A DNA stretch of 64,000 bases from Macrostomum hystrix (Eukaryota > Animalia > Platyhelminthes). The stretch is from the NCBI GenBank assembly GCA_950097015.1, contig CATNEN010000031.1:806001-870000 (forward strand), given 5' to 3'. Position numbers and translations under genes: made by a program. The notes below the pieces were generated by a model. It was given only the letters and a program-made list of their open reading frames with translations, was not told the DNA's origin and did not search any database. Positions 169-29,201 of the stretch are shown one piece after another. The first letter of the stretch is position 1. Every line of letters begins with the position of its first letter.

Positions 169-1131
169 GTGGATTCCCATGCCACAGAGATTAACAAAAA
201 ATGTGGATACCCTATTCTTCTCTTAAGGAAATTAGCTAGCCATGGGGCGGTCAGATACAATCAGCTCATGCTGTACTGCACAGCAATGATAGAAAGCATA
301 GCTCTGTACGCCTCCGAGGCCTGGGGGGCTTTTGTCTCGTGGAACCTGGGTCCTTGGGACCGCTGTCTTGTGGAAAGGGTAAACATCAGGTGCTGTAAAG
401 CCATACTACAAGTCAGCCAAAATACGGATGGCAACGGGGCCCGCTCGGAGTTAGGCAGATTGCCTTTATTATACAACATCCAGAAAAGAAGCATTTCGTA
501 CTGGGCCTCCATAACAAGCCGGCCGGACTCCATAATTTTCAAGTTATTGGCGGACCAAACATACAGTGATGTTGGAATCAAAGCAAAGACCAACAATGAC
601 GTTATGCTGAACTGCAGAGGCATTAGTCCCGCAAAAGCAATTGGAAACCACAGGAAAAATTTCGTTTCTCAGTTTGATACCCATTGGAGACAAAGGACAC
701 AGAACTCAAGCAAGCTAAGACACTTCTATTACTCCTTCAAGCAATATTATTCAGCCGAAAAATATTTACAGCAAGTATACAACCCGGAGTTGAGACGTAC
801 CATATCCTCGTTTAGACTAGGAAACCATAAGCTAGCTTGCGAAACATTGCGAACTGCAAGACCGAAAATTCCGTATGAGAACAGATTATGTAGTAAGTGC
901 AAAACAGAAGTTGAAAACGAGGTCCACTTCCTTTTTAAGTGCAGTTGGAATATGTATAGCGCAGCACGTTCGAATTTTGAGAAGGAAATTTCTGGGAAAA
1001 CTCCCAATTTCATATCCTTAACAGCAGAAGAGAAATCTAACTACATAATGGCTCAAGACGATAGGGAAACCAATGAAGCTTTAGCAAAATACATCATAGA
1101 TATCTCTAAAATAAGGGAACAGCTGCCCTGA
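169..1131 (+). mobile_element. Non-LTR retrotransposon (LINE, L2/Crack-like) ORF2 C-terminal fragment, 5'-truncated
   Basis: 320-aa ORF with post-RT motifs (INKKCGYPILLLRKL...MIESIALYASEAWG; FCKAIL-like CCKAILQV; ELGRLPL; FRLGNHKL) and the C-terminal Zn-binding motif RLCSKCKTEVENEVHFLFKC. Followed by a T-rich 3' UTR and an A-rich tail near 1320-1341. Confidence 0.85.
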
Positions 1132-1368
1132 GACTACAAGCTCGCATTAACATTTAACAATATATATATTGTTTTATTCGTGGCGTCCCTTGTGTTTTTA
1201 CTGCTCTTATTTTTAATACCTTTGCTTTTGCTTTTCCCTTCCCAGCTCGATAGTGGAATCCTACAAAACTTCGCCTTTTATGTTATGTTTTTCGTTGTCC
1301 ATTAAAATATTTGTCAACAAAAATATATAAAGAAAAAAAAATCAGCACCCATAGATGGCGTGCGCGTT

Positions 1369-1370
<2 letters not shown>

Positions 1371-1399
<29 letters not shown>
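1371..1399. repeat. (AAT)n microsatellite
   Basis: About 10 perfect AAT units seen directly. Confidence 0.95.
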
Positions 1400-1400
<1 letters not shown>

Positions 1401-2698
1401 CAGGCAAACATAAACATCACTGATTCAAGTTTAACTTATAATAATTAACTTATTAACCAGACAATTATTCATCTGCTATCAGACTCGGATATAGTTTCAT
1501 CCAACAACTGAACGGTTATTGACAAGTTTAAACTGGAATTTCGCATGGCTTTGGACTAGCAGTCAGCGCGAGAGCGCCATGGGTCAAGCTTAGAATTTGA
1601 GTACAAAACACACAGGATCCTGGAGTTATCCTATGCTGCAGCATTCAGACTTGAAGTTGAGCGGTATTGCAGTTTGGAAATGGTTATTGTTGTCACTGCT
1701 TCTTGGAAAGCCTAGGGCTAAAGTGACCGACTCAATCGGTATGATGCAGACTTGTCAAAACAAATCTAGCAACGTGAGTTTGGATACTGTCATGAGAAAC
1801 AGGGATTGCGGTATTTTGAACTCATGAAGAGTAATCGACCATTTTCATTAGCTCGTTCTAGAGCTCTTTGCTTTTGTCTCTCTATTTCTTCTCATTACAT
1901 GATTCACTCGAGCCGTAGCCTCAAAGCCGCCGTAGACAATAATGGGGAATACCGATACCCCTAATGAGCACTGATGCAAAAGTCTATTCAAAGTTAGTCA
2001 ATTAAAAGTGCAAATGAAAGCCACAACAGAAACATACATTTTTTAAACGACTTGTACTTTGTGCACTTTAGTCTAGTCAGAAAGAATAGAAACTACACTT
2101 ACCCGAGTTGGGCCAGATGTACAGCCAGTGGCTACTGCACGACGCTTCCAAAGGCTGTGTACAGTTGTTCAGTCCGTGGACATGGCATGCCACAACACCT
2201 ACCCAAATTTCTAACCCAGATTCTGCTTGTAAGCATTTACCTATTCCGTGCCATACATAGCTGCTTATCGGCTGAGGTTTAACCTACCAGTGGCATAGAA
2301 GCTTCCTTCATCCATCATGCACTATTGTTCATACATTGTTAATACAAAAATCATACTATAAAACTGTTCTAATCATACTGACATACCGGAAATTATGAAT
2401 CAATTCTGCACTTTAGAATCCAGCTAAATAGATTCCATCGCGTCAGAACGCAACAACAGCTTTTACCCGCTTTTTATTGATGTGATCTAATGCGTGAAAT
2501 AGTCGACAGTCCAGCCAACGGTTCGCACAATGCCACTTGATATGCAATGTTCACAATAAAATTGTAAGTTTTGAATTTTGACTGTCAGCACTATGCAGTA
2601 GCACATTTTAGGCACCTCGAGTTGGGAGACCATCAGGTAGAATCTTCAATTTGGCTCATCGACAGCTGCAATGATTCGGTCAACAATGGAGAGATCAG

Positions 2699-2783
2699 TT
2701 AGCTCTGACGTCGTCGGTACAAAAAAGTGCGAAGACTCATTCCAAACCATGAAGAACTCACGCTATTAAGCTCTGACGCATCT

Positions 2784-2816
<33 letters not shown>

Positions 2817-5800
2817 GAATTCAGCCGAGCGACTCGCAGCGGAATGGCCACCAGCTGGAAGCTGCGCCGCGATCCGCTCAGGCATCGGTACGTGCCGATC
2901 GCCAGCCCGACGCAGAATGCGACCGCCAGGGCACCCAGGCCGAGCCCCATCAGGCTATTCCCAGACTCCGCATGAGGCCCACGCAGAAGCAACTTGGCCA
3001 GCGTGCCGTCTGACTTCGGGGCGTCCGTTGGAGCTTCAAGCGGCTTGGTCAAAGGCTCAACTGTCGACTTGCTTACTTTCTGAGCATCCGATAGGGAGGT
3101 TCTTGAGAAGCCGTCGGCAGCTACAGTGGAAGCAATGCTATCGGCGGCCAAGCCAATGTGCAAGTCAGCTTCCATGTTCTCATTCGAGGTCTTTTCGATG
3201 GCTAAAATGGGGAGATCGTTCGACAGTCATTGCATTCGCGATCGGAATTTTGATATTTGAGTGTATTCTCTAACTTCCACTCACTGTAGTTTGCCTGAAA
3301 CATTTTCGAGTTTCTCGATGGACCAAAAACTCGGTCTCCGATCTCCGTGAACTGGCTGACCTGACAGGTGACGGTGACTGCAGCCTGAGGCTCCAGCAGC
3401 CGTTGGAGCACCTGGGCTCTTTGGACCCAGCCAGAGTTGGGACCCAGCCGTTCTGACAAGGGAATAATCTGAAGTAAAAGCACAATGCAGTCAACATTTA
3501 TCAACATATCCTTAGAAAAATTCAGCAATACATCACTTGATCCCTTCATCGATATTTCACGTAAACTTTTTGTAATATAAGTCCTTATTATGCAATCAGC
3601 CCCTCATCCCAACGGGACTGGTTCAGGGTCGATCACCGTCACAGTGTCGATGCTGACAGCTTCTGATGTCAGCGAGCAGTGCAGTTCAGGCCGAGGGTTT
3701 CCCTCCTCCGTCAGCACTGCCAGCACCAGGTCCGAGCCGTTGACAAGCCGGCCAGACCAGCCGATGGTGCTCGCGGAGACTGCAAAGGCAGGAGAGGAAA
3801 GTCATGAGGTCGCGGATACCCATGACGGACACTCGTGTGTCAAATTGATTACAGTGAACTGTGATGGTCTGCGAGAACTCCTGAGTGTATTCCGACCTCC
3901 CTGCCTGACTGGCTCTGCATTTCAGGTGTCCAGAGTTGAATCTCCGAACGACGATGATGGAGAACTTGCTCACGAGGTGAGACGGACCCGCGTAAACGCG
4001 GCTCGGTTTCAGACGCACCTGGAGATTGCGGACGGTACAATAACCAGAGTGCTCAATCAATACAAGTTCAACAGTGAAAGCAGTCTTGGATTCACCTGAG
4101 AGCCGTCAATGATCTGCAGCCAGCACTGTTGATTCGGCTCCGGGTTGCCCTCGAGAGACTCCACATTGAAGGTCATTCGCTGGCCCTCCTTCAACACGAT
4201 TGGTGCGCTCGCGGACCAGTTGCTTCTGGCTGTGACTAAAATGAGTAAAGTACAAGAAAATCACATCAGAATCAGAGATGTGAGAAATCAGAGAGCTTCT
4301 CACAATGAACCGTCAGGTTTCGAGACGCTCTCTGCCAGAACAGAGTGAGCGATCCATTGCTCTGGGTGAGGTCGCACTCGACAACGCATCCGTGCACCAT
4401 CGCCTTCGTCACTTCGAAGCTGCCAGTCTGAAATGACATGCAAAGGGTCATGCAGTCGAGTTTGGGTTTGCTCGAGAGTATTGACAGAGTCCTCTCACAA
4501 GGTTCTCCGTCAGTGGGAGCAAGGTAACTGAGCCCGTGCATGAGAGGCTGCAGCTGACAGTCGACTGTGGCTGGCCTGGTGTGACGTGAACCCTGAATTC
4601 TGTGGCATTGCCTACTTTCAGTACGTCTGGCAGATCTATGCTCAGTGCGGCCGGATCTGCAGAGGGGAGTAGAGACGCTAAGATATGAGCACCGATTCGA
4701 TTGAAAATGCTGGACTGCGCATGCTTACTCACAGTAGACTGTAAGTCTCTGACTGAAGAAGTGCAAAAACTGGCGAGTATTGGCCACACATCTCAGCACC
4801 GTTTGGTCCATCAAAGGCGTAGCGGTGAAGACAAAGCGAGTCACCAGGGGAGATTCTCCAAGTCGCGATCCATTGTTCGCAAAGGCCTTTTAAGCAAGCA
4901 AATCAATTACTTTTAGGCCGTGGCTCATTGAAAACGAAAACATTATATTCAACTTACCGTAGAGCCATTGGCTAGTATGATGAAACATATATGAAGTGGC
5001 ACAGGGTTGCCACCGAGAGATGTCAATGTCACCTGAAAGGTATCTCCCTGCATGACCCACAGAGTGGGAGTTCCGGTCCATGAACTGTTGGATCGGTCTG
5101 CCGGAATTATCGATCGAGGGTTTAACAGAAGTGCACGGACAGGAATGCATGACGGGTTAATATTTATTGATACTTTACTGTCTGACTGTTCTTACTAACA
5201 TTCAATGTTTAAACGCCTATTAGCCCAGTCCGAGAACACAATTGTTGAGTTGATGGTCTGATTGAGCAAACAGACTAGGTCTCCATGATGCATGCTTCTC
5301 TGGGGCATGAACTGGCCAGTCTGAAAAGCAAGAGTGGGGACTTATGAAGAGTGCCAGCTTTCAGGTCAAATTCGTGGCACATGCTCGCACCAGATCTGGG
5401 CTCAGCGGCACGCTGAGGACAACGCCATTGGCTCGCACACTGCAGTCGACCTGAGGTGGCGGCTGTCCAGAGCTGACGTTGACGCTGAAGTTTGCTGCGA
5501 CGCCCTCCGTAAGGACCTCCGGGACGGAAATGCTGATTGACGCAGCAACTGGAGACAGTGAGGATATGCTGGGCTTTTATGTCCAAATGTCACGTAGGAC
5601 TACCAAGCCGTTTCGCCGCCCATTTTTATACCAACAGGTGGGAAATTCCCCCTGATAATTATTTTCGCTGCACCCAAACAGAGCAACGCAAGCAAACGAA
5701 ACTCATGAACACGGGCCAACTTTTTGTTGCGCATTTTCTGAAACAGGAATCAAGTCGCCAGCCCTACAGACCGTGGTGATATTCAACAGTTCTGGCTGAA

Positions 5801-8800
5801 GGTCAGACTTTCCTAGTGTATTTCAAATACCCCTATAAACGAATTTGCACTGCGCATCAGTGCAGCCTTGGCAGGCCTTTAAAATTTCTCGGCACGTCAT
5901 CCGAATGTGCCTGCATCTTCTCCGACATCGATGGTCACTGAGCTTTATCTAGAATACAATGGCTTCTTATGGGAAAAAGCAGACCGTCGGCCAGAACCGG
6001 CGAATATCTCATGTTTCAGAAGATGCACAGCAAAAAGTTGGCCCGTGTTCATGAGTTCCGTGAGGCCTGCGTTGCGCTGGGGGGCGCGAATTCGTATCTT
6101 GAAAAGCGAAATTAGCGATCTGACTCACACAGCACCGCTGGCAGCCGCTGCTCAGTCCAGGTCTCGAAGAGTCCCGACTGGTTGGCCAGGCACAGCAGCG
6201 ATGCCCCGCTGCCCCAGAGCCGGCTTACGTTCAGCGAGTAGGAGCTGCTGCTGTTTGTGGTCTGCGGAGCAGCAAATCGTATTCATAGGGTAAATTCTAG
6301 TCGTAAGTTGTGGATATTGCTGTCGGATTGTCATCAGAAATTGTGACGTACCAACATTGGAGTCAAGCTGGTGTTGCCGAGGTCGGACTGAAGCAGGCAG
6401 CTGTGGCTGGTCTCGAGCTGGTTGCTGTCCGATGAGTTCACGGTGAGGCTCACAGTTGCGCCATCCAGCCAGCTGGCTAGCTCTGGCAGCTGGAAGAGCG
6501 TCCTGCAGCGAACTGAGAGAGCGAGTCGGTTGAGTAGTGTGACTCAGCTCACAGCTAACTAAATCCTTATGTGAGTATTGGCTATTCATTCACTGCCAGG
6601 GCAAGAATTGAAATTATTCTGAGCCTCACAGAGAAACCGTGGCACCGACAGCTGCCTGGTCTCCGCCACACCTGTGCCTTGCAGCTGGGATTCGCACGAG
6701 ACGTTCCCGTGCTCGAATTCAGCACTCACGATCGGTCTGAACTCGGACTGCAGCCTCACGAATGAGTAGACATCTGTGAATCCTCTCTCCTGCTGGCTCT
6801 CGGATGCGGCTGACAGAGCCAGTCGGTGGCCGTTGCTGCTGACCAGTGAGCAGGAATGCCGCGGTGCGGGCAGGGCGAAGTCCGTACTGAAGCTGAAGTG
6901 CACCGGCTTGCCCACCAGCCAGTGAGGGGCGCCATTCAGGCTGAGCTTCACCGACCGCGAAGGAACTGCGGGTGTGGAGGCGAGACTAAATTTTTCCTCA
7001 CTAGCTTCAAACCGTTTCATAAGAGTGTAGCTTTTCCTTAAGAAAGATACGAGAATGAAAACTTCGATCAGCCTTATATTGAGAATTTATTAAGATGAAA
7101 CTGAGCGAAAATCGGATCGCACCTACGAACTCGAGCGTCTCGGAGACAGCCTGGCTTCCTCCGTCCGAGCACCTGTAGCTAAGAGTGAGCACTGCTCCCT
7201 GCATCCACAAATATCCGATCAGCGAGAACCTCAGCTGGTTGACTGACAACTAAAGTGAAAAAAAACTAGCTGAAATGTGTTTTCGGCTAGACAGACAGCA
7301 AAGCGATTCGCAATGATTACCCTGTGGAATTCATTGGTCGGGTTCGGCAGCACTCGAGTGCCGTTGGGAAGCTTCATAGTAAGAGTCACATGACCTGGCT
7401 GCATTGTGCACGGCAGATGCGCCAGCACCGTGACGCCGCGACCATCGGTGAGAAGCCGCAGGCCGCCATCATGACACTCGGTGGATTCAGTTGTGCAAAC
7501 TGAGAACTTACCAGCTTCTGTGGCTGAAAGCGATCAAGTTGCTCTTCATCAGGGATAGCGTCTACATAGAAAGTATCATCGATACTAGTATCAGAAAGTA
7601 ACTGGATCGGAGCTGTCAGTCACTAACAAAAGATTTATTGAATGATTTGGCTGTGGGAATGGTGCGAGTTTCTGTATCCAATGCCCGCAAAGATTACTTA
7701 GAATTGCCAAGCCAACGAAGCTCATGTTCGCGTAATGGTCGGCCAGCTTCCTCAGCAGGATGACGGACGCTCTGGTCTGCAATGCCGGACAGCTCAAACT
7801 GGCAATCAATTCTTGGAAGGAAATCAATATCGACTATTTTTTATAATCCTAAATTCCTTAATTAGGACGCCCACCTGACTGGCCAGCGAGCAGCAGGAGA
7901 CTGTGAGCAGCTCCCCGTCTGCGATCCCCGCGGCCTTGGTGGAGCCGCACAGTGAGAAGTCCTCAGCCCTGAAGCCGGCCATCCACTCGGACTGGCAGCT
8001 GTCCTTGCGCAGCAGCTCACCTGGCAGTGTACCGGAATAGTACACCTGCACTCCTGCGGCCCCGTTGCGGGCCTCGTCGCTGCCACCTGAGGTTTTTGAA
8101 GGTTGACAAGTTGTGAGCTGTGAAACTGCTCAAGCTATTTTCTACATGTAGCTTGACGCCACCAATTACTTGTGCACTTGAAAAATGCTTGAAGGTCGTG
8201 GCGAGTATAGTTATCTTGAAGGAGGTACTCAGGAAATAGAAATGTTCCGTGTTAATTTATTATTTCAGTTGCCCCTTCTAGGAAAAGTTTAGGAGAGGAG
8301 ACTGTGGAGCATCACGTCATCAACTGCCTTTATTTGAGTAAGTGCACCAGCTGCTGGCTCCTTGGCCACCCCGACTGGATAGACGAGCTGACTGCCCCGG
8401 ACAACATCCGTGACATTCGCGCCTTCGTCCTGGACACCAGGCGGATGAGGGTCGCCGACACTTTCCCTGAAAACATGCAGTCAGTAAGTGCTTGGCATCA
8501 CACACTCGGACTCACTGCCAGCCTGAATCTGCAGCAGCCATAGAAGCGCAGGCTGCCGCAGCTGCAGCAGAAACCAGTGGTAGTCGGCGTCCGCAGTCGC
8601 CCAGCTGCCGGACTGAAAGAAGCCGGAGCCCAGCGGCGTCGAATAATTCCAGAAGCAGCTGGTTTGAGATTGGAATCGCCAGGAAGATGACTGCCAGGTT
8701 CGGACCAGGTTGGTCTTTGACACCGGGGAAAAATTGTCTAAAATAATCGAATTGGATTCTCAGAACTGTCGATTTATTCAGCTTTATTGTTTGGCACCTA

Positions 8801-11413
8801 TAATCACCTTCTTCGATCTCCATATACTTGAAGTTTAGCATTTTATCTTCGCTGTGCAGCACATTCTTGAGAAGCAGAATGTAGTTTGTCAGCTGGATCA
8901 GAAGATGGAGCTTAATCAGAAATTATTTGACAAGTCGTACTTATTAGATCGAAATATTTAGTACAGTATGGTTTCATAAGCCGACCTGGCTGCAAGGTGT
9001 CCTGGAGCAGCGCACTGATTTCCTCATATTACTATCAGCAGTAATGCCGCACAGGTCCAGCTGATCCGATTGCGAGGTGTGCAAGTAGCCCAGACAGCTG
9101 GACTGGGCTGTCATGAGCTGCTCAGGCAGAGTGCTCGCATGCCGAACCGCGATATTGTTGGCTCTGTTATTCACTAAAGTCGGGTGGGCGGAGAATAATG
9201 GACTTTGCAATGGAATGGCTTAGCTCTTGGCGGTCTCTTATTAGGCAGTGAGTTGTCAGGTGAGGCAGTGAGCTGTCAGGTGAGGCAGTGAGTTGTCAGG
9301 TGAGGCAGTGAGCTGTCAGGTGAGGCAGTGAGCTGTCAGGTGAGGCATTGAGCTGTCAGGTGAGGCAGTGAGCTGTCAGGTGAGGCAGTGAGCTGTCAGG
9401 TGAGGCAGTGAGCTGTCAGGTGAGACAGTGAGCTGTCAGGTGAGAGCAGTGAGCTGTCAGGTGAGGCAGTAAGCTGTCAGGTGAGGCATTGAGCTGTCAG
9501 GTGAGGCAGTGAGCTGTCAGGTGAGGCAGTAAGCTGTCAGGTGAGGCAGTGAGCTGTCAGGTGAGGAAATGAGGCAGTGAGGTGTCAAGTGAGGCAGTGA
9601 GCTGTCAGGTGAGGTAGTGAGGAAGTGAGCTGTCAGGTGAGGAAATGAGGCAGTGAGGTGTCAAGTGAGGCAGTTAGCTGTCAGGTGAGGTAGTGAGGCA
9701 GTGAGGTGTCAAGTGAGGCAGTGAGCTGTCAGGTGAGGTAGTGAGGCAGTGAGGTGTCAAGTGAGTCAGTGAGCTGTCAGGTGAGGTAGTGAGGCAGTGA
9801 GGTGTCAAGTGAGTCAGTGAGCTGTCAGGTGAGGTAGTGAGGCAGTGAGGTGTCAAGTGAGGCAGTGAGCTGTCAGGTGAGGTAGTGAGGCAGTGAGGTG
9901 TCAAGTGAGTCAGTGAGCTGTCAGGTGAGGTAGTGAGGCAGGAGGTGTCAAGTGAGGCAGTGAGCTGTCAGGTGAGGTAGTGAGGCAGTGAGGTGTCAAG
10001 TGAGGCAGTGAGGCAGTGAGCTATAAGGTGAGGTAGTGAGCTGTCAGGTGAGGCAGTGAGGTGCGAGAAAGAGTAAGTTTAAAGATTCGTCTTGGCACTT
10101 AAAAAATTGTCCCGGTCTGGCATCCAGCGTGACGGACAGCAAGCGCACAGGCCTAGCCAGCCGGATCAGCAGCCACTGGTAGCCCGAGTCCGATCTGTCG
10201 GCTGTGTGAAAGTAGTCCCAATGGCCGGTGCGGCTGATGGTGTTGCTGAAGCAATAGGTGTCAGAGTCGCCGTACCTGGAGGATTGCCAGGACTGGGCGA
10301 CCAGGCTGTCGGTCACGACGACTGATTTTCCTGATGATGGACGGTTTGGGTTGCACCCGGTCTATGCATGAATTCACGCCCCTTGTGGCCTAACCCGAAG
10401 GTGCAGTGTGTACATATGCACTTCCTGATGATGAAGAATTCGGTGATGAAGAGCTCAGTGACAGTTTAACATTTCTCCCCTGGGGTAAGACCACGCGGTA
10501 TTTCGTATACCCACTGTCCACCTCACGATAGCTCCCAAATAGAATGACAGATTTTCGTGAAAAATCCACCATATAAATCCAAGTTTGCCGCACTAACTTT
10601 CAAAAGCGTCCGATATCAGCATCGTCGCGATATTCAGCGATTCTTGTCGAAGACCCTGGCGACAAAGACAACTAACATTGCTCTTTGTATAGACCTCTAT
10701 GGTGAATCAATATTGGTAAAAAAATTAACAATATAGTCAAATTAATATAACTAAAATAATATCCGACTAGGTTATAGCTCGTTTATTGGCGGTGTTTGGT
10801 ACCCACACCCCGACGAGAATCGTTGAATATTTCGACGATGACCGATGTTTTGTGATTCTGGAAGTTGTTTCATCGGATAGAGCAGAAAATGTTAGCCCGT
10901 GTTCTGGATTTTCCTGGTGGTTAGTTGAATTTTTGGGAAGTACAGAAAAAGTATGGGTATCTGAGATGCCCCTATAGTCTTTCTACCGTTAATTAAAAGT
11001 GTGTCCATATTTGCTATAAGAGACCAAGAGTTGAAAGCCAAGTCTTTGTTGAACAGAACAGTATTGGACCGCAAAAAGACGTTGCATATAATCATTCTGC
11101 TGTACACTATTTAAGTAGAGGACCAACGATTGGCGATGCAGGTGAGCAGCCAATCAATGATAACAATAGTCCTATTTCAAACGTCCGAATAATGCCGCGC
11201 AAGTGGTCCCTTCTGAGCTTTACTGATGCACCTGTTTTCCGTGATCTTGCAAGTGACACAACCCGACATACGAGCGTATACCTCATACACAACTCGTATA
11301 TGATTACCTGCAGCCACATTGTCCAGCAGAACACAGCAGAGAAGCACTAGTAGCGGCAGACGCGGCAGGCAGCGAGAGCCCGCTCTGAACCGGATCGACT
11401 TCTTAGCAAACAT
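2699..11413 (-). CDS. Type I membrane receptor, ~1385 aa: signal peptide, 2 F-type lectin (FTP) domains, Cys-poor Ig-like domain, 7 atypical Ig (nephrin/Kirre C2-like) domains, S/T stalk, TM helix, polyQ cytoplasmic tail
   Basis: Manual splice model, all introns GT-AG with consistent phases: 11413-11308, 10330-10099, 9163-8986, 8892-8808, 8737-8516, 8086-7875, 7833-7698, 7561-7512, 7476-7321, 7249-7123, 7004-6630, 6512-6352, 6261-6129, 5548-5391, 5320-5200, 5097-4958, 4886-4733, 4656-4499, 4427-4304, 4235-4096, 4018-3853, 3779-3643 (or 3637), 3468-3285, 3201-2699; total 4158 nt, open to a stop. N-terminus [36 protein letters not shown] is a signal peptide. FTP-like AQSWQSS...YFHT...WLLIRL occurs twice. 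Ig motifs GGNPVP/EGNPEP/EGNPRP and [30 protein letters not shown]. Confidence 0.82.
5670..6100. mobile_element. Foldback/MITE-like element in a receptor intron
   Basis: 48-bp inverted repeat: 5698-5745 GAAACTCATGAACACGGGCCAACTTTTTGTTGCGCATTTTCTGAAACA versus 6012-6059, 4 mismatches. Weaker dyad symmetry extends outward and inward. Confidence 0.65.
9246..10062. repeat. 20-bp minisatellite (GTGAGCTGTCAGGTGAGGCA) in receptor intron 2
   Basis: Tandem units seen directly; higher-order variants with GGTGTCAA in the 3' half. Confidence 0.95.
10487..10988 (+). mobile_element. Non-autonomous TIR element, copy 1 (same family as 25100-25466)
   Basis: Colinear similarity to the reverse complement of 25100-25466 (GATAGCTCCCAAA; CATCGTCG.GATATTCA.CGATTCT; TTTTGTGATTCTGGAAGTTGT.TCATCGGATAGAGC). 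Right end GTCTTTCTACCG is followed by TTAA. Confidence 0.7.
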
Positions 11414-11756
11414 TTCGACAACTGAGCGACCTACAGATGCTGGAAAACTGCTGAAAAATATCACTGAAGATCCACCTTTTATAACCTGTGCCGCACACAA
11501 GAACGGATAGAATGCAGCTTCAGTGTACACGTCTCTCCCTGGATACTTCCACCTTGGAAAGGGAAAACCAATTTCTTGTGAAACAGTCCTTATCGTCGAC
11601 GTCATCTCATCGCCTTTTGGACGCTTAAAAACTGTTCGTCCTTTAATTTGCGCAAAATAGGGCCAACCCCCAAAGGCATAGTGGACACAGCTTCAAGGCA
11701 GATGCACACACGCTTCAGGGCCTGGTGTCATTCTGCAAACATTACTACCTGTATTA

Positions 11757-12252
11757 CGAGGGTCACTCAGAAAGTCTTTAGCCTGAGTATGATCCACGAG
11801 ACGCAGAAGCATGAAATTTGTCTATGGTAAAGACCACCTTTTAAAAGTCTTATAGCTAAATTTTCAAACAGAAGCAGTTACTTTTGAGTCCACTGCAGTG
11901 AGCCAAAGTCAGTTCACCCCTTGCGCCGTTCAATTGCACAATGAAGCTGGAAAATCGTGACTTCAGAGCTATGATGTACTTGCATTTCAAGCAAGGCAAG
12001 TCGCCGGCCGATTCATTTCAAAAATATTAAAGGGCCAGATTTTTTCTTCGCCGGAAGAAGCTGTGAATGAGTTCAAAGACGTCATCGGGGAGCTCCGGGA
12101 TGAGGATTGGCGGCAGTGCTTCGACAGCTGGTTCCACAGGATGCAAGCCTGCATCAATGCGGGGGGAGAGTACTTTGAGCAGTTGTAATGGTTTTTTAGT
12201 TCATATGTTGCTGTTTTCTTGTTCAGGCTAAAGACTTTCTGAGTGACCCTCG
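11757..12252 (+). mobile_element. Internally deleted mariner element (496 bp)
   Basis: Perfect 30-bp TIRs CGAGGGTCACTCAGAAAGTCTTTAGCCTGA (11757-11786 and 12223-12252) with TA duplications on both sides. Transposase N-terminus MKLENRDFRAMMYLHFKQGKS (ATG 11941) is joined to the C-terminus LKGQIFSSPEEAVNEF...WFHRMQACINAGGEYFEQL* (stop 12188). Confidence 0.95.
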
Positions 12253-12659
12253 TATAATAGTAACGTTGGGCTGAAAGTAATTTGAGCAAGAAAAGTCCCA
12301 GTTCGACTGCTCCAAACTTTTCAGGTTGTTCTCAATTCTGACATTCGTTAAGCACTAACCATTACCATTATAATGGATTAAAAATAATTACAGAGAGCTG
12401 TTGTAAAAGTATTGAAAAGTTCAAACTGAGACCAATTTGCCAATCGAGACTGGCATTTAAGCGGTTGTGTTTATTTTTTGCAGACAACTTCTTATCTCTC
12501 CTTCAACCAGACACGATTTCAAAGATAAAAAGCTTTCGCTTTCTGATTGGTTAAAAAAGATTAATCTCGAGGCGAAACTTTTGCTGCATGCAGCAAAATT
12601 CAACACAGTGGAAAATATTATAGCACTTAAGCTTGTTAGACGCTAATGTGTTTATGCCA

Positions 12660-13270
12660 CTGTTGCTAAGGTGATGATACCCACAGTTGCTAAGGTGATG
12701 ATACCCACTGTTGCTAAGGTGATGATACCCACTGTTGCTAAGGTGATGATACCCACTGTTGCTAAGGTGATGATACCCACTGGTGGCCTGGTGCTATGGT
12801 GATGATACCCACTGTTGCTAAGGTGATGATACCTACTGTTGCTAAGGTGATGATACCCACAGTTGCTAAGGTAATGATACCTACTGTTGCTAAGGTGATG
12901 ATACCCACTGTTGCTAAGGTGATGATACCCACAGTTGCTAAGGTAATGATACCCACTGGTGGCCTGGTGCTATGGTGATGATACCCACTGTTGCTAAGGT
13001 AATGATACCTACTGTTGCTAAGGTGATGATACCCACAGTTGCTAAGGTAATGATACCCACTGGTGGCCTGGTGCTATGGTGATGATACCCACTGTTGCTA
13101 AGGTAATGATACCTACTGTTGCTAAGGTGACGATACCCACCGTAGTTAAGGTGATGATACCCACTATAGCTATGGTGATGATACCCACTGTTGCTATGGT
13201 GATGCTACACACAGTTGCTAAGGTGATGATACACAATGTTGCTATGGTGATGATAACAACTGTTGCTATG
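12660..13270. repeat. 24-bp minisatellite (CCACTGTTGCTAAGGTGATGATAC)
   Basis: Tandem units, interrupted three times by a TGGTGGCCTGGTGCTATG variant. Confidence 0.95.
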
Positions 13271-13780
13271 TAGCCATGCTCTGTTGATGATAGCAACGCA
13301 CCAACTGTTAATTTTGAGGCGTCATTAAGAAACAAATAGTTCCAGAAAAATCCAATTATACTACGAGCTAGTGTTCACTAATGTCTTGGTGTTCTCACAA
13401 CTGCGCAGACCACCTGGCCATCGAAGATAACAGGAAAGGCCTGGGAAAGTTACTTTAGCTAAACAAACTAGGCGATTGTGCAATCTGATGCATACCTGAT
13501 CGGCATATACAATTTAGCCTTTCAGAACTTAAAAATGTAAACAGAAATTTCCAAGAAATAGCGCTAACTAACGCTAAGTCATAACGATGAACATTTTTAA
13601 GCACGGCGAAAATACGCAATTCTGCAATGCAATTTCTATACTAGCAAAATAATAAATACCTAGCTCTAACTGCATTCAGGGTCTGATGGTTACAGAGAAG
13701 GCTAAGATTGTACTAATTGATTAGGCGGGCATTTACAACTCCCAGTCCGGGGTGAAGGCGGCGTTCACGGCCTCATGCCT

Positions 13781-16700
13781 TCAGGCCGGTGAGGGAGTCG
13801 GCAGGGGCGCGCGCCGCCGGAGCAGCTGGCGAAGGCGTTGCACAATGGACAGCCGGACTGGCGCCTCGCTGGGATTGCGATCCTCAGTTAGCTGCGGGTG
13901 CGAGGGAATGGGAGATCAGAGAGATCTGACAATATTGGAGTAGGGAGATAAGCAAAAACTGACGGAATGAGAGTGGGGAGAAGGACTCAGGGGAAGAGGA
14001 GAGTGGGGGACAAGGACTGAGGGGAAGAGGAGAGTGGGGGAGAAGGACTGAGGGGAAGAGGAGAGTGGGGGACAAGGACTGAGGGGAAGAGGAGAGTGGG
14101 GAGAAGGACTGAGGGGAAGAGGAGAGTGGGGAGAAGGACTGAGGGGAAGAGGAGAGTCGGGGAGAAGGACTGAGGGGAAGAGAAGAGTGGGGGAGAAGGA
14201 CTGAGGGGAAGAGGAGAGTGGGGAGAAGGACTGAGGGGAAGAGAAGAGTGGGGGAGAAGGACTGAGGGGAAGAGGAGAGTGGGGGACAAGGACTGAGGGG
14301 AAGAGGAGAGTGGGGGAGAAGGACTGAGGGGAAGAGGAGAGTGGGGGAGAAGGACTGAGGGGAAGAGGAGAGTGGGGGAGAAGGACTGAGGGGAAGAGAA
14401 GAGTGGGGGAGAAGGACTGAGGGGAAGAGGAGAGTGGGGGACAAGGACTGAGGGGAAGAGGAGAGTGGGGAGAAGGACTAGGCGAAAAAAGAGAGGGAAA
14501 GAGGGTGGTATTCCACCGTCCAACTTATATCGCAACGAAAAGCAATATCTTACATTTGTGACGCGCAGTTGCCAGACTCGGGCATCGTTGGTGACATGCG
14601 CGTAAATTAAGTAGTCATGCCACCTGGCAGTGATGCGATAGGAATATATTAAATATGCATGGTCTGGATAATCTGGGGATGCAACTAAAATCAACGTAAA
14701 GTCGACTCAAACTGGGGAAACTAAGGGATCGACTCAAACTGGGGAAACTAAGGGATCGACTCAAACTGGGGAAAATAAGGGATCGACTCAAACTGGGGAA
14801 ACTAAGGGATCGACTCAAACTAGGGAAACTAAGGGATCGACTCAAACTGGGGAAACTAAGGGATCGACTCAAACTGGGGAAACTAAGGGATCGACTCAAA
14901 CTGGGGAAACTAAGGGATCGACTCAAACTGGAGAAACTAAGGGATCGACTCAAACTGGAGAAACTAAGGGATCGACTCAAACTGGAGAAACTAAGGGATC
15001 AACTCTAACTAGGGAAACTAAGGGATCGACTCAAACTGGAGAAACTAAGGGATCAACTCTAACTAGGGAAACTAAGGGATCGACTCAAACTGGAGAAACT
15101 AAGGGACCGACTCAAACTGGGGAAACTAAGGGACCGACTCAAACTGGGGAAACTAAGGGATCGACTCTAACTGGGGAAACTAAGGGATCGACTCAAACTG
15201 GGGAAACTAAGGGATCGACTCAAACTGGGGAAACTAAGGGACCGACTCAAACTGGGGAAACTAAGGGATCGACTCAAACTGGGGAAACTAAGGGATCGAC
15301 TCAAACTGGGGAAACTAAGGGATCGACTCAAACTGGGGAAACTAAGGGATCGACTCAAACTGGGGAAACTAAGGGATCGACTCAAACTGGGGAAACTAAG
15401 GGATCGACTCAAACTGGGGAAACTAAGGGATCGACTCAAACTGGGGAAACTAAGGGATCGACTCAAACTGGGGAAACTAAGGGATCGACTCAAACTGGGG
15501 AAACTAAGGGATCGACTCAAACTGGGGAAACTAAGGGATCGACTCAAACTGGGGAAACTAAGGGATCGGCTGTACTCCAAATGAATGAGGCTTCATCGCG
15601 GAATCAAATACTTATTATTTGGGGATATTGAGATATTTATGAATCTAAGAGGTGGAATGTGTACATCAAGTGAGAAAGGTGGTCGAATTCGTGAGCACTT
15701 ACTCGCCATTCTGCTCAATGTAGGCAGCGGTGCCCAGCTGGTTCATCTTGGTCAGGTGCGTGAACGGTTTGGAGCCGCCGATGCAGCGCACGCGGAGGCG
15801 AATAGCAAGGCAGCTGTTGGCCCTGTCAGTGTCGATGCGGAGAATCACCGGCTTCTTCATAGCGTACCGAACATCGTAGTAAAGCTTCAGCTTCAGCCGG
15901 TCCACTGACAGGAGGTAGACGCCTCTGGATTGGAATGGAATCAGAATGGGATTAGAATGGAATTGGAATGAAATAGAATGGTATAAGAATGGAATCATAA
16001 TGAAAAAGAATGGAATTAGAATGGAATTGGAATGGTATCAGAATGGAATCAGAATGGAATTAGAATGGAATCAGAATGGAATAAGAATGGAATCAGAACG
16101 GAATAAGAATGGAATCAGAATGGAATCAGAATGGAATAAGAATGGAATCAGAATGGAATCAGAATGGAATCAGAATGGAATAAGAATGGAATCAGAATGG
16201 AATCAGAATGGAATCAGAATGGAATCAGAATGGAATAAGAATGGAATCAGAATGGAATAAGAATGGAATCAGAATGGAATAAGAATGGAATCAGAATGGA
16301 ATAAGAATGGAATCAGAATGGAATCAGAATGGAATCAGAATGGAATAAGAATGGAATCAGAATGGAATCAGAATGGAATCAGAATGGAATAAGAATGGAA
16401 TCAGAATGGAATCAGAATGGAATCAGAATGGAATAAGAATGGAATCAGAATGGAATACGAATGGAATCAGAATGGAATCAGAATGGAATCAGAATGGAAT
16501 AAGAATGGAATCAGAATGGAATACGAATGGAATCAGAATGGAATCAGAATGGAATCAGAATGGAATAAGAATGGAATCAGAATGGAATAAGAATGGAATA
16601 AGAATGGAATCAGAATGGAATAAGAATGGAATCAGAACGGAATAAGAATGGAATCAGAATGGATTCAGAATGGAATAAGAATGGAATAAGAATGGAATCA

Positions 16701-19228
16701 GAATGGAATCAGAATGGAATAAGAATGGAATCAGAATGGAATACGAATGGAATAAGAATGGAATCAGAATGGAATACGAATGGAATCAGAATGGAATCAG
16801 AATGGAATCAGAATGGAATAAGAATGGAATCAGAATGGAATACGAATGGAATCAGAATGGAATCAGAATGGAATCAGAATGGAATCAGAATGGAATAAGA
16901 ATGGAATCAGAATGGAATACGAATGGAATCAGAATGGAATCAGAATGGAATCAGAATGGAATAAGAATGGAATCAGAATGGAATACGAATGGAATCAGAA
17001 TGGAATCAGAATGGAATCAGAATGGAATCAGAATGGAATCAGAATGGAATAAGAATGGAATCAGAATGGAATACGAATGGAATCAGAATGGAATCAGAAT
17101 GGAATACGAATGGAATAAGAATGGAATCAGAATGGAATACGAATGGAATCAGAATGGAATCAGAATGGAATCAGAATGGAATCAGAATGGAATCAGAATG
17201 GAATCAGAATGGAATAGAATGGAATCAGAATGGAATAATAATGGAATCGGAATGGAATCAGAATGGAATCAGAATGGAATCAGAATGGAATCAGAATGGA
17301 ATAATAATGGAATCGGAATGAAGTCAGAATGGATTCAGAATGGAATAGGAATGGAATCAGAATAGAAGGATGGGTTGGTATAGGACATTCCAGAATCGAG
17401 TTGACCCAGCTTACTTAGAAACCTTAGCAGGTGTCTGCATCTCGTTGATGTACACAAGATCGGGCGTGAATACGCTGTAATCCATTAGGCTGACAAAGAA
17501 GCGAGGAATCTGTCAAACGGTAAAAATTGTGCTCTGGTCTGATTGACTGACGCAAATGAGTAGCCAACTAAAGTGGCTAGTGAATAAATTGGCTTACAAA
17601 CTCCTCCATGTGATATTTCACAGCGTTGAGTTGGTCAATGGTGGCAGTCTTTGTGTAGTTAGGCGTCGCTTTGCAAGGATTCTTGTAGGTAATGGCTGTT
17701 CGATCCTGCAATCGTTTCACCTCCTTCTTCAGTCTCTCGATGGCCTCTCGGTCTTCCTGATCCTGGCGGCTCCTCCGGTCGTTTGGCTTCGGCTCAGGCT
17801 GAGGCGGAGGCGGACTCGCCGCGGCAGCCAGAAAGGACAGTGGAGGCAGCGGCTGTGTTCGATCCGTTTGCTGGCTGACAGTCTAAAAATTGCAAGCGCT
17901 ACTTACTGACTTATGAATGGTCGCAACTGTCTACTGCTAATATAGTATTAAGTAAATTAAATTTCTCTAGCAGTAGAATCCCTGAAGAATAGGGGGCTAG
18001 CACTAGTTCCCTGAAGAATAGGGGGCTAGCACTAGTTCCCTGAAGAATAGGGGGCTAGCACTAGTTCCCTGAAGAATAGGGGGCTAGCACTAGTTCCCTG
18101 AAGAATAGGGGGCTAGCACTAGTTCCCTGAAGGATAGGGGGCTAGCACTAGTTCCCTGAAGGATAGGGGGCTAGCACTAGTTCCCTGAAGGATAGGGGGC
18201 TAGCACTAGTTCCCTGAAGGATAGGGGGCTAGCACTAGCTCCCTGAAGGATAGGGAGTTAGCACTAGTTCCATGAAGGATAGGGGGCTAGCACTAGCTCC
18301 CTGAAGGATAGGGGGCTAGCACTAGTTCCCTGAAGGATAGGGGGCTAGCACTAGTTCCCTGAAGGATAGGGGGCTAGCACTAGCTCCCTGAAGGATAGGG
18401 AGTTAGCACTAGTTCCATGAAGGATAGGGGCTAGCACTAGCTCCCTGAAGGATAGGGGGCTAGCACTAGTTCCCTGAAGGATAGGGGGCTAGCACTAGTT
18501 CCCTGAAGGATAGGGGGCTAGCACTAGTTCCCTGAAGGATAGGGGGCTAGCACTAGTTCCCTGAAGGATAGGGGGCTAGCACTAGCTCCCTGAAGGATAG
18601 GGGGCTAGCACTAGTTCCCTGAAGGATAGGGGGCTAGCACTAGCTCCCTGAAGGATAGGGAGTTAGCACTAGTTCCATGAAGGATAGGGGCTAGCACTAG
18701 CTCCCTGAAGGATAGGGGGCTAGCACTAGTTCCCTGAAGGATAGGGGGCTAGCACTAGTTCCCTGAAGGATAGGGGGCTAGCACTAGCTCCCTGAAGGAT
18801 AGGGAGTTAGCACTAGTTCCCTGAAGGATAGGGGGCTAGCACTAGTTCCCTGAAGGATAGGGAGTTAGCACTAGTTCCCTGAAGGATAGGGGGCTAGCAC
18901 TAGTTCCTTGAAGCGGATAGGGGGCTAGCACTAGTTCCCGAGGCCCAGATGATAGCAGATGATAGCAACTAGCAAGTGAACCAACCATTCCTGACAAAGG
19001 TTCAGTCTGAAATAGCTGGTCGCAGCTTTGCCAAAGAGGCTTAGAAGAGGCTGCACTAGCGAGTGACGGCGGCAGAGGCGCCCGCAGTCTGTGTACGAGC
19101 TGGGCCCGGGCGAGTCCGCTGTTGCAGCAGCGGTGCACTTTTAGCAGGTGATTGAATGGCCGGCTAACTGAGCACCAGGACTGCCTGTTGGAGGCCAGGA
19201 GCAGCGACTGCAGCTCACTGGAGATCAT
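13781..19228 (-). CDS. C6orf136: C6orf136/DUF2358 (SnoaL-like) family protein, probably mitochondrial
   Basis: Exons 19228-18986, 17882-17598, 17509-17415, 15924-15703, an uncertain small exon ~15644-15612, ~14687/14623-14554 and ~13891-13781. Translation MEEFIPRFFVSLMDYSVFTPDLVYINEM...GVYLLSVDRLKL...LRIDTDRANSCLAIRLRV resembles human C6orf136 (ELPKLFLQSHDYSLYSLDVEFINEIL...GRTWYILSL) as recalled. R/S/L-rich N-terminus. Splicing across 15700-14620 is not resolved. Confidence 0.65.
13968..14478. repeat. 30-31-bp purine-rich minisatellite (GAGGGGAAGAGGAGAGTGGGGGAGAAGGACT) in an intron
   Basis: Tandem units seen directly. Confidence 0.95.
14702..15568. repeat. 27-bp minisatellite (GATCGACTCAAACTGGGGAAACTAAGG) in an intron
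   Basis: About 32 near-identical units. Confidence 0.95.
15930..17365. repeat. 11-bp satellite GAATGGAA(TCA/TAA/TAC) in an intron
   Basis: About 130 units, built on a GGAAT core. Confidence 0.97.
17978..18938. repeat. 29-bp minisatellite (TCCCTGAAGGATAGGGGGCTAGCACTAGT) in an intron
   Basis: Tandem units seen directly. Confidence 0.95.
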
Positions 19229-25600: not shown

Positions 25601-28600
25601 AGAGTGGCACGCAGTTGCCAACTTTGACAGCTGAGACAGGCGCGTGAACGCGCAGCTCGGCTAGGGGGACAACGGACACCCAACCGTGGGCGGTCGAGAA
25701 CACGCGGGGACTGCCGCTGGAGTCGAAGCCGACTGACTCTACGCGAACCTAGAGTGGCGCGGTGTTAGTAGGATGTGGCCTCAATAATCTTTGCCAAAGA
25801 CAGAAACTCCCCACGCATAGACACAACTAACGAAAGACTGAACATTCCTAAAATCTTTAGAGCTTTCTAAGAACTTAACAACTTAAAATCTGAAGCCTTG
25901 AGATAACACAAACAGACAAACTTTCTTGCAACCTAAAAGCTTACCATAAACTTAGAAACCTTATTTCAACCTGTAATAAACTTCCCAATTAGAAAGTAGG
26001 CTTTAGCCTAGCAACTCCCAAAACCTAGCAACGTCCCAAACCTAGCATAGCAACTTCCCAAACCTAGCATAGCAACTTCCCAAACCTAGCCTAGCAACTT
26101 CCCAAACCTAGCAACTTCCCAAACCTAGCCTAGCAACTTCCCAAACCTAGCAACTTCCCAAACCTAGCCTAGCAACTTCCCAAACCTAGCAACTTCCCAA
26201 ACCTAGCCTAGCAACTTCCCAAACCTAGCCTAGCAACTCCCAAAACCTAGCCTAGCAACTTCTCAAACCTAGAGCAAATAAAGAAACTTCCCATAAAAAA
26301 TCAAGCTTTCTAAACTTATCTAAACTTCCTATAATCTAGAAACTTCCCTGCAAAAAAATTCGGCTGCTTCTTCGGCGGTTTTTTGTGCAAAATAGGAGTG
26401 GAATCTACCAAAATCCCCCCTATCTCGCAAGAGTTAAAGAAACCACCCAGGAAGCAGCCGATGTAACCGTAAATTGTGCGGAAACCGCCGAAGAATCACC
26501 CGAACCAGTGGCCCATGGGACAACCAGAGAATTATTTACGGGCGATTCCTCGGCAGTTTCTGAGCATGGAATCTTCCGAACTGGAGGATTCTTTGGGTGA
26601 TTCCATTTCGCCACCAAAAAGCACCGAGAAAACGCCCAGTTGGGTAGTTTCTAAGCATGGAATCATCCGATTGGTATGTTTCCAGCGTTCGGCTGTTTAT
26701 TTTTCTGGAAACATCGCAGATTCCAACTGGAATCACCCAAAGAAACATCCCTATTTTTAGCGGGTTTCTAAGCCTAGAAATCTCCAATGTCATAAATTTT
26801 ACCTAGGGCTCAGAACAATAGCTGTTCGCAATTAAGCCTACCTGGACCCGCCCCTCGGCGGTTGCGTCCACCAACCCGGCCTGGGACACGGCGGCCACAG
26901 CCGCGCCGAAGCGTCGGCCAACGCCGCCCTCAGTCGTGGCCGGCAGTGCCGAGAAGCGAAGCGCAGCAGCCGGTGGGCCGCCGACAGCCTGGAGTTGAAT
27001 CTGGCTGCCAACCAGCAGGGTGACATTGGCTGGACGCAGCCGCAGAGGCGGATAGACGGTCACCTGTGCCCAGTTGCTGCGCACTCCCTGGCATTCGGCT
27101 TGCACACGGGCAACGCCGATTGACTCGCCGGTGGCGCTGACACTGCCGACGCCTTCATCGGCGGAGCCAACAGCGGCAGTAGCGGATTCGTTAAGAGCAA
27201 CGCTAACTAAACCGGGCGGCTCGGAGCGCAGTCCGAGTGGCAGGCCGGCTTCAACAATCAGGCGCAGCGGAATCGGCCGGTCGCCGCGGCCGAGGAGACG
27301 CAGAGAGCCGGTCTCGCGGCCGCCCAACGGCAGCCGGTCTTCCATGACGAGCCGCATTGATCTGAGAGCCACAACCAGCAGGGGCACCTCCAGCGGCCTG
27401 GGGCGGTCCATGCACAGATCGTAGACTGTCACAATTGACTCCGTCTCCCGATCGCTGCCGGCTGTGAGAAATCGGCCCTGAATAGTAGGACCGGATGAGC
27501 CGCCAATTCCGGTGCCAGTTTCGGCTGTAGCGTGAAAATGACCGCTACCGTCTGCCAGATAGGCGGCTGCCCGGCCACGCCCGTGGTAGCTGATTAGGCG
27601 GCCCGGATGAGCAGCCGCATCGCCGGCTGTGCGAAGCTGGGCGCTGGACGACACGGGCGGCTGCTGCACGGCGGAGGTCCACTTGCTATAGTCCGGTTTG
27701 TAGCCGGAGAGCGTCGCCGTGATCTGGCGGAGAGGCGGTCATCTCGCTTTTGCTAAATGCATCCGATTAATGGTGCGACTAAGGGGTCAATGACTCACAG
27801 TGTGTGAGCACGGGAGGTCAATGACTCGCCGAGTGTGTAAGCAGGGGGTCAATGACTGGCAGTGTGTGAGCAGGGGGTCAATGACTGACAGTGTGTGAGC
27901 AGGGGGTCAATGACTGGCAGTGTGTGAGCAGGGGGTCAATGACTGACAGTGTGTGAGCAGGGGGTCAATGACTGAAGGTGTGTGAGCAGGGGGTCAATGA
28001 CTGACAGTGTGTGTGCAGGGGGTCAATGACTGACAGTGTGTGTGCAGGGGGTCAATGACTGACAGTGTGTGTGCAGGGGGTCAATGACTGGCAGTGTGTG
28101 TGCAGGGGGTCAATGACTGACAGTGTGTGAGCAGGGGGTCAATGACTGAAGGTGTGTGAGCAGGGGGTCAATGACTGACAGTGTGTGTGCAGGGGGTCAA
28201 TGACTGACAGTGTGTGAGCAGGGGGTCAATGACGGACAGTGTGTGAGCATGGGTCAATGACTGACAGTGTGTGAGCAGGGGGTCAATGACGGACAGTGTG
28301 TGAGCAGGGGGTCAATGACTGACAGTGTGTGAGCAGGGGGTCAATGACTGGCAGTGTGTGTGCAGGGGGTCAATGACTGACAGTGTGTGAGCAGGGGGTC
28401 AATGACTGAAGGTGTGTGAGCAGGGGGTCAATGACTGACAGTGTGTGTGCAGGGGGTCAATGACTGACAGTGTGTGAGCAGGGGGTCAATGACGGACAGT
28501 GTGTGAGCATGGGTCAATGACTGACTGTGTGAGCAGGGGGTCAATGACGGACAGTGTGTGAGCAGGGGGTCAATGACTGACAGTGTGTGAGCAGGGGGTC

Positions 28601-29201
28601 AATGACTGACAGTGTGTGAGCAGGGAGGTCAATGACTTTGCGAGTGCCAGAACAGGGCTGATTAAGGACTGGCCGCATGCTTGAGCAGGGGGCCAAGGAC
28701 TGACCAAATGTTGGAGCAGGCGGGGTATAGGTCTGACTAAATGTTTGGAGACAGGACACGCCCCATCAAAAAGTGGTGGGATGACAGGAATGATGACTCA
28801 TTCGATAAAGAAAAGAAAACAAAAGAAGGTGCTCAACTTGTCACTCACCTGCACCGTGTCATTTCGATTATTGGGCTGCACTCGAATCAGCGGCACCGGC
28901 GCCGAGTCGTCCGCCACCGCAGGGGCAGCCACATCCGGGTCGCTGCTGGTCACTGACACAGCCAAGCTGGCCAGACTGGTAAACTGGCGACCTTCGGCGT
29001 CAAGGGCAACCAGGCGGAGAGACACTGGACGATAGTTGTGAACTGGCACAGGCAGAGACGGGTCCTCAAGCACAGCAGGACAGGGCGGCAGGCCGGGCCT
29101 AGTTGGCAGATTCAATAGCGGCTGCAGGCGCAGGCTAGTGGGCACGGCGCATACAAAGCTCACCTGAGGGATTGGAGAAGGCCGAATTTCTTATATCATA
29201 C

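Follow-up and report, generated by a model that had tools for sequence, protein, structure and literature searches.

The hallmark of the classical immunoglobulin (Ig) domain is a disulfide bond between strands B and F together with a packing tryptophan. The second domain (D2) of CD4 has instead a bond between strands C and F, which has been treated as a special redox switch and which is, to our knowledge, the sole precedent for C-F pairing at exactly this site. Here, we analyzed a stretch of 64,000 nucleotides from the flatworm Macrostomum hystrix (contig CATNEN010000031.1, positions 806,001 to 870,000 of the forward strand; hereafter the window), in which a gene on the minus strand encodes seven tandem domains (Ig1 to Ig7) with this cysteine pattern in every one of them. 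We consider it likely that these domains make up a receptor stalk of rewired Ig domains, in which the cysteines were switched a single time and now form structural C-F staples.

In CD4 D2, Leu118 is located on strand B, Cys130 on strand C and Cys159 on strand F, and the two cysteines form a cross-strand disulfide within the sheet (PMC4354306), a bond classed as -RHStaple (PMC3352085). As in CD4 D2, a hydrophobic residue stands in place of the B-strand cysteine in the array (F, V or L, compared to Leu118 in CD4), a cysteine has been gained on strand C and the F-strand cysteine has been retained. By contrast, a single domain of four is concerned in CD4, whereas here it is every domain of a stalk of five to seven domains, in at least four genes. 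The CD4 bond arose late in mammals and is redox-active, while the bond is predicted here; the two cysteines are 34-52 residues apart in the array compared to 29 in CD4, and no sequence relationship links CD4 D2 to the array (profile E 0.1). The C2-set domains of nephrin/SYG-2, Kirre/Rst/SYG-1, nectin and Necl have the same fold and share GNPxP before strand C, xLxCxAN on strand F and LxVxY at strand G. However, they possess the canonical B-F disulfide and the tryptophan, and the array has neither. Moreover, the similarity of the window protein to them is under the family thresholds, and it has no FN3 domain, no V-type first domain, and a lectin-like head. KIR2DL4, a surface receptor, also has a cross-strand -RHStaple disulfide in one of its Ig domains (Cys10-Cys28 of D0; PMC13661046), but this bond links strands A and B and exchanges with the canonical B-F bond, and no B-strand cysteine is present here. 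An earlier sequence-only reading of the window had proposed the CD4 D2 analogy, which was matched in residue logic and strand register, and a nephrin/Kirre likeness, which holds at the level of fold and motif, orthology not being supported. It had also known of no described receptor of this architecture, and our literature search on tandem Ig domains with cross-strand or C-F disulfides, the Ig superfamily of Macrostomum and F-type lectins found no such array described.

Three-frame translation of the minus strand from 7300 to 2600 recovered all seven of the repeat motif pairs quoted in the sequence-only reading. Introns were chosen by scoring the GT-AG pairs that preserve the frame, which gave a model of 14 exons without internal stop, with the seven tandem repeats in 13 exons (6968..3285, minus strand) and a 14th exon at 3201-2699. 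In the aligned repeats, a cysteine is found under GNPxPxxxC (7/7) and under xLxCxAN (7/7), and the canonical B-strand cysteine position is occupied, from Ig1 to Ig7, by F, V, V, L, V, V and V. The switch described earlier (loss of the B-strand cysteine, tryptophan to cysteine on strand C, F-strand cysteine kept) was therefore borne out in all seven repeats. Of the classical Ig triad (B-strand cysteine, F-strand cysteine and C-strand tryptophan), the F-strand cysteine alone is present in the seven domains and in all the domains of the M. lignano paralogs presented below. Across 12 first halves of domains, the C-strand cysteine is the sole invariant column. As cysteine represents about 2.4% of the ectodomain residues and pairwise identity among the seven repeats is 14-38%, two all-cysteine columns exclude chance. 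The modelled Ig array contains 17 cysteines, an odd number. Ig5 holds a second pair, C459 and C486, and the 17th cysteine, C133, lies in the Ig1-Ig2 linker (FRCRT) just ahead of Ig2 strand A, and the M. lignano paralogs have it as well (YRCNT). This residue could pair with the lectin-like head, make an inter-chain link, for instance in a covalent dimer, or take part in a disulfide exchange of the KIR2DL4 kind (PMC13661046).

When Ig1 was compared using phmmer to 1.84 billion representative proteins, we found two true relatives only; two further matches, P0003 and P0004, are repeat proteins and were rejected as spurious. P0003 (1325 aa) consists of a repeat of about 50 residues ('…VANFWARVSSKYDRCHPGCCRQLLGQ…') and scored E 3e-15 against Ig1 with no stretch aligned; it is apparently a translated satellite that matched falsely through its composition. 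Word-indexed protein searches returned three clusters, all from M. lignano and named just 'Ig-like domain-containing protein', and the domain profile had no match among proteins of 62-196 aa. A cluster look-up led to the full-length GenBank protein PAA50157.1 (P0007; 1136 aa, contig NIVC01003706.1), in which a signal peptide and two discoidin-like or F-type-lectin-like regions precede five Ig domains, with a transmembrane helix and a tail after them. This contig carries three tandem paralogs, at 500-8600, 10001-19023 and 26800-29023, with 7, 5 and at least 3 Ig domains, respectively. Exons are skipped or introns read through in the UniProt models A0A1I8GMR8, A0A1I8J128, A0A1I8HMY5 and A0A1I8F2R4; the first half of Ig4, for instance, is missing from these models and present in the M. 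lignano DNA at NIVC01003706.1 6299-6433.

Using hidden Markov models of the two half-domains, we detected exactly 7+7 halves in the array, none elsewhere in the 64 kb of the window, and 15+14 halves in the M. lignano contig. The switch is kept in 22/22 first halves (C-strand cysteine, no B-strand cysteine) and in 21/21 second halves (F-strand cysteine). Compared to the seven-domain M. lignano paralog, all 14 signature cysteines of the window gene are conserved, with a residue identity of 52-81% per Ig exon, and window exons show 66-86% DNA identity to M. lignano. The ratio of nonsynonymous to synonymous substitution rates (dN/dS) between these two genes was 0.23 over 798 codons, for a dS of 1.16. 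Since every domain of the family carries the switch under purifying selection, these results argue for one ancestral change and a structural solution, and not for seven regulatory switches. The most plausible reading of the pattern is a single event in an ancestral Ig unit of two exons, and not seven parallel substitutions.

Fold prediction was performed with AlphaFold2 (AF2) on two single domains, the window Ig1 and a paralog Ig5, each with an alignment of the repeats. Both models are all-beta, two-sheet Ig sandwiches of 7-8 strands, with a predicted local distance difference test (pLDDT) of 84.9 and a predicted TM-score (pTM) of 0.76 for Ig1, and values of 95.0 and 0.81 for the paralog Ig5. 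With Foldseek, the Ig1 model matched butyrophilin, SYG-2 D4, SYG-1 D1-D2, Necl-4 and PD-L1, and the paralog Ig5 model matched Ig domains of MLCK, Robo, titin, OTK and sDscam. The best VIA-align match of the latter was ICAM-1 D3 (Z 11.6, root-mean-square deviation of 1.6 Å over 84 of 93 residues), followed by Necl-4 D2, Rst D2, NEGR1 and VCAM-1. ICAM-1 D3 is the closest solved structure to the Ig5 model, at 17% identity, a likeness of fold only. The language-model neighbours of the paralog array were all CD80-like C2-set clusters (score 0.93). On the basis of these models, the repeats are predicted to be Ig domains of the C2 or CD80-like C2-set kind, in agreement with the sequence-only reading, which had called them Ig domains.

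The repeat profile was also compared to the PDB, where it matched nectin-4 D2 (E 0.004), SYG-2 (E 0.02-0.04), and CD22 and CD4 D2 (0.1). In the nectin-4 D2 and SYG-2 alignments, the new cysteine of the family falls on their tryptophan. Residues 101-130/131 of CD4 D2 align to the profile up to its cysteine position, without significance. The half-domain profile gave noise only against the PDB, and two-domain and whole-protein alignments were misaligned and set aside. Kit D5, in which the cysteine of the profile aligned to the cysteine of PGTEQRCSAS, was rejected as a C-F precedent on account of the canonical B-strand cysteine and tryptophan that D5 presumably has. Membership of the nephrin/Kirre (IRM) family was not found for the array, given the weak SYG-2 profile matches, the lectin-like head and the lack of the canonical cysteines. 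From its sequence, the array appears to be a variant of C2-set Ig domains, with a likeness to nectin, nephrin and Kirre and no family membership shown.

The placement of the two cysteines was read from the strand limits of the models and from the residue register. In the Ig1 model, Cys39 is in the middle of strand 35-43 and Cys91 in the middle of strand 87-95, and the two strands are co-terminal in an antiparallel register that sets both cysteines opposite each other (39+91 = 35+95 = 43+87). For the paralog Ig5 model, the two strands span residues 33-40, which include Cys36, and residues 67-76, which include Cys70. The tryptophan of strand C and the cysteine of strand F are anchors that, in classical Ig domains, share one run of backbone-backbone contacts across the GFCC' sheet (PMC12051499); it follows that a cysteine replacing the tryptophan has the F-strand cysteine as its immediate cross-strand neighbour. 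The models fit a mid-strand position on C for one cysteine and a position on strand F for the other, with a register that would put them directly opposite.

The additional cysteines of the window Ig5 lie at +4 (C459) and -4 (C486) from the main pair, and obey the same register (455+490 = 459+486). Their counterparts in the paralog model are W40, the last residue of strand C, and G66, the residue before strand F (40+66 = 36+70 = 106), and both M. lignano paralogs have the non-cysteine residues W and G at these positions. The joint gain of C459 and C486 at register-matched sites is difficult to account for unless both the modelled strand pairing and a bond between the cysteines are real. This suggests the recent gain of a second cross-strand staple, in Ig5 of the window gene alone. 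Judged from the alignment and the models, the repeats would have what defines a domain of the CD4 D2 type, namely a hydrophobic residue in place of the B-strand cysteine and a C-strand cysteine opposite the F-strand one.

The exon structure of the gene is regular, with inter-repeat introns all in phase 1 and intra-repeat introns all in phase 0. Ig1 alone is encoded by one exon (6630..6968; all the exons that follow are likewise on the minus strand), with its C-strand cysteine codon at 6852-6850 and its F-strand cysteine codon at 6696-6694. Each of the other domains is encoded by two exons. The first half of Ig2, covering strands A-C' (6352..6512), contains the codon of the linker Cys133 (6507-6505) and that of the C-strand cysteine (6399-6397), with a junction homologous to the paralog coding sequence (CDS), and the second half, covering strands E-G (6129..6261), contains the F-strand cysteine codon at 6192-6190. 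For Ig3, the two halves are at 5391..5548 (C-strand cysteine codon 5444-5442) and 5200..5320 (F-strand cysteine codon 5272-5270), and for Ig4 at 4958..5097 (4987-4985), the half with the M. lignano counterpart in DNA mentioned above, and 4733..4886 (4790-4788). The first half of Ig5 (4499..4656) carries the C-strand cysteine codon at 4552-4550 and that of Cys459 at 4540-4538; its second half (4304..4427) carries the codon of Cys486 at 4388-4386 and the F-strand cysteine codon at 4376-4374. Ig6 lies at 4096..4235 (C-strand cysteine codon 4125-4123) and 3853..4018 (F-strand cysteine codon 3919-3917), and Ig7 at 3637..3779 (3678-3676) and 3285..3468 (3366-3364), the latter half with a junction backed by PAA50157.1.

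The domain that precedes the array ends with an exon at 7123..7249, which joins Ig1 in phase 1 and is homologous to residues 445-486 of PAA50157.1. This exon ends with '…ETLEFV' and one G before GTGCGA. The acceptor CCCGCAG is at 6969, and the joined junction agrees with EFVVPPQSVSLSL of the paralog. Of the bounds 3285-7004 given previously for the repeats, 3285 is exact and 7004 lies 36 bases too far, the true start of the Ig1 exon being 6968. A third cysteine per domain, on strand G, was read from LTVHC/LTVYC in the raw open reading frames and rejected: its TGT is a phase-1 splice donor (T|GTGAGT), and the spliced end of strand G reads LTVYYP, the usual C2-type ending. The introns of the CDS of PAA50157.1 match the positions and phases of our model (for example, 'AVPRFF T|GTGAGT' compared to 'SVPRFL T|GTGAGG'). 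Since the M. lignano annotation derives from a genome-guided RNA-seq assembly (PMC5730564), this transcript-derived CDS with the same introns gives indirect transcript support to the exon structure.

In the final modelled exon (2699..3201), a Ser/Thr/Pro-rich linker leads to a transmembrane helix and to a short tail that includes a run of ten glutamines, the stop, at 2701-2699, being uncertain. A GTGAGT donor is present inside this exon near 2757, after '…EDASELNS', and at the homologous spot in the M. lignano paralog a splice leads to a final mini-exon of 10 residues; the true C-terminus of the gene may therefore lie downstream of 2699. The ectodomain contains 19 N-glycosylation sequons, which, together with the clear transmembrane helix, places the Ig array outside the cell. 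The intron between Ig2 and Ig3 (5549-6128) measures 580 nt, and the others 68-168 nt. It contains an inverted repeat of 53 nt (arms at 5696-5748 and 6009-6061, 91% complementary), which looks like a small foldback or an insertion of the miniature inverted-repeat transposable element type.

Overall, we propose that this stretch would encode the stalk of a receptor, a type I membrane protein of a Macrostomum-type flatworm. Judging from PAA50157.1 and the open frames of the window, the protein would begin with a signal peptide and two F-type-lectin-like or discoidin-like domains, and the modelled remainder would consist of seven C2-type Ig domains, the linker, the transmembrane helix and a short polyglutamine tail. 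The domains would represent a lineage-specific subtype in which, in place of the inter-sheet B-F disulfide and the packing tryptophan, strand B has an aliphatic or aromatic residue and strand C a cysteine that faces, across the GFC sheet, the F-strand cysteine that was retained. Under the oxidising conditions of the secretory pathway, an intra-sheet cross-strand disulfide like Cys130-Cys159 of CD4 D2 would be the most likely outcome, and we find it probable that the bonds form as intra-sheet C-F staples. The switch would have arisen once in an ancestral two-exon domain, before tandem domain and gene duplication, and would be maintained by purifying selection, its primary role probably being structural, as a staple for the GFC sheet.

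Several results weigh against structural staples in Ig domains. No Pfam Ig family matched the window Ig1, the half-domains or the full-length paralog PAA50157.1, and the best match, Ig_3 on the Ig6 of the paralog, reached 17.9 bits for a cut-off of 30 (E 0.0045). In the Pfam check that the sequence-only reading had proposed, no domain tested reached the gathering cut-off of C2-set_2 or Ig_3. The E-values of the PDB profile comparison are weak (0.004 and above), and the AF2 alignments are shallow, with 20-21 rows that are mostly the repeats themselves. The model evidence on the bonds consists of strand limits. The wider profile search that had also been proposed led to the M. lignano paralogs and to no other species, and searches of 1.8 and 5.8 billion proteins gave no homologue outside M. 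lignano. Finally, the conserved Cys133 is an odd cysteine, and the transcript support for the exon model comes from a paralog only (PAA50157.1).

This last point, together with UniProt paralog models that are fragmentary and skip exons, could mean that the pattern is meaningless, produced by mis-joined open reading frames or by a decaying paralog. We hold such an artefact or dead gene to be very unlikely, in view of the 14 exons with regular phases and no stop, the intron positions identical to those of a transcript-derived CDS, the low dN/dS and the confident fold predictions. A real gene could also have cysteines that are unpaired within their domain, either free, modified (glutathionylated, for example) or engaged in inter-domain or inter-chain bonds, which would make the protein a covalent oligomer or a thiol sensor. 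The odd number of cysteines in the array agrees with this, and chicken CD4 D2 has one unpaired F-strand cysteine (PMC4354306). Nevertheless, the cysteines always come as two per domain, in all seven repeats and in all the paralog domains, and the extra cysteines of Ig5 were gained as an in-register pair. In addition, the modelled strands would place both partners on one face, at directly opposed positions, and side chains facing the core are badly placed for inter-domain bonds, so that we regard non-pairing as quite improbable.

If the bonds form, they may still be labile. The CD4 D2 bond at the same site is allosteric and thioredoxin-reducible (PMC3352085, PMC4354306), cross-strand disulfides are typically strained, and the -RHStaple bond of KIR2DL4 D0 is a switch in an Ig domain (PMC13661046). 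The seven C-F bonds could likewise be allosteric bonds of the -RHStaple class, opened by thioredoxin, PDI or force, with a signal carried by the length, stiffness or oligomeric state of the stalk; the conserved, unpaired Cys133 beside Ig2 could then be an exchange partner. Against this, the bonds would face the core of the sandwich on interior strands, and the corresponding CD4 site is shielded from thioredoxin by strand G (PMC4354306). Their retention in all 22 or more domains under purifying selection also points to a structural requirement, a regulatory switch being likelier in one or a few domains. We consider labile allosteric bonds unlikely, and we give little chance to the C-F bonds acting as redox or mechanical switches. 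It also seems doubtful to us that the stalk is a chain of seven strained cross-strand disulfides (doubled in Ig5) opened serially by oxidoreductases or tension, with Cys133 as the exchange partner; if this were true, receptor length, compliance or dimerisation would be set by redox state or force. Structural C-F staples are thus the reading that we prefer.

Upstream of the array, the exons at 7123-11413 may encode two F-type lectin or discoidin-like domains, an assignment that is weakly supported by sequence similarity. They resemble the FTP/discoidin-like domains of F-type lectin (fucolectin/FTP) receptors, and Pfam on the paralog gave weak matches under the cut-off for F5_F8_type_C (E 0.01) and F5_F8_type_C_2 (E 0.32), with noise only for the upstream open reading frame pieces of the window. 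An open frame at 10047..10361 (minus strand) with a candidate exon of such a domain is a lead with unrefined bounds; its Atlas features were fucolectin/FTP and F5_F8_type_C_2 clusters (score 0.95). A putative signal peptide is located near 11300-11400 of the window. An intron of this lectin-like part also contains a G-rich minisatellite (9243-10060) with a unit of about 20 nt in about 41 copies, higher-order periods of 48 and 96 nt and a GC skew up to 0.6, whose open reading frames are non-coding. The protein would comprise about 5-7 Ig domains and two lectin-like domains. The head may bind carbohydrates, and the protein may have a role in recognition or immunity. Our literature search found no paper on an FTP head atop an Ig stalk in flatworms.

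If the bonds form, 22 or more domains, with 14-38% identity within the window gene and the arrangement kept under purifying selection, would show that a C-F disulfide is a stable and heritable way to build an Ig domain. The family would then be a natural series in which to ask whether 'forbidden' cross-strand disulfides are inherently labile or plain structural staples, and a natural comparison for the effect of disulfide position on the mechanical unfolding of Ig domains. Profile libraries overlook such domains, as Pfam recognised none of them. With a lectin-like head on its stalk and a tandem, fast-diverging gene cluster, this receptor is a candidate recognition molecule in a flatworm amenable to transgenesis.

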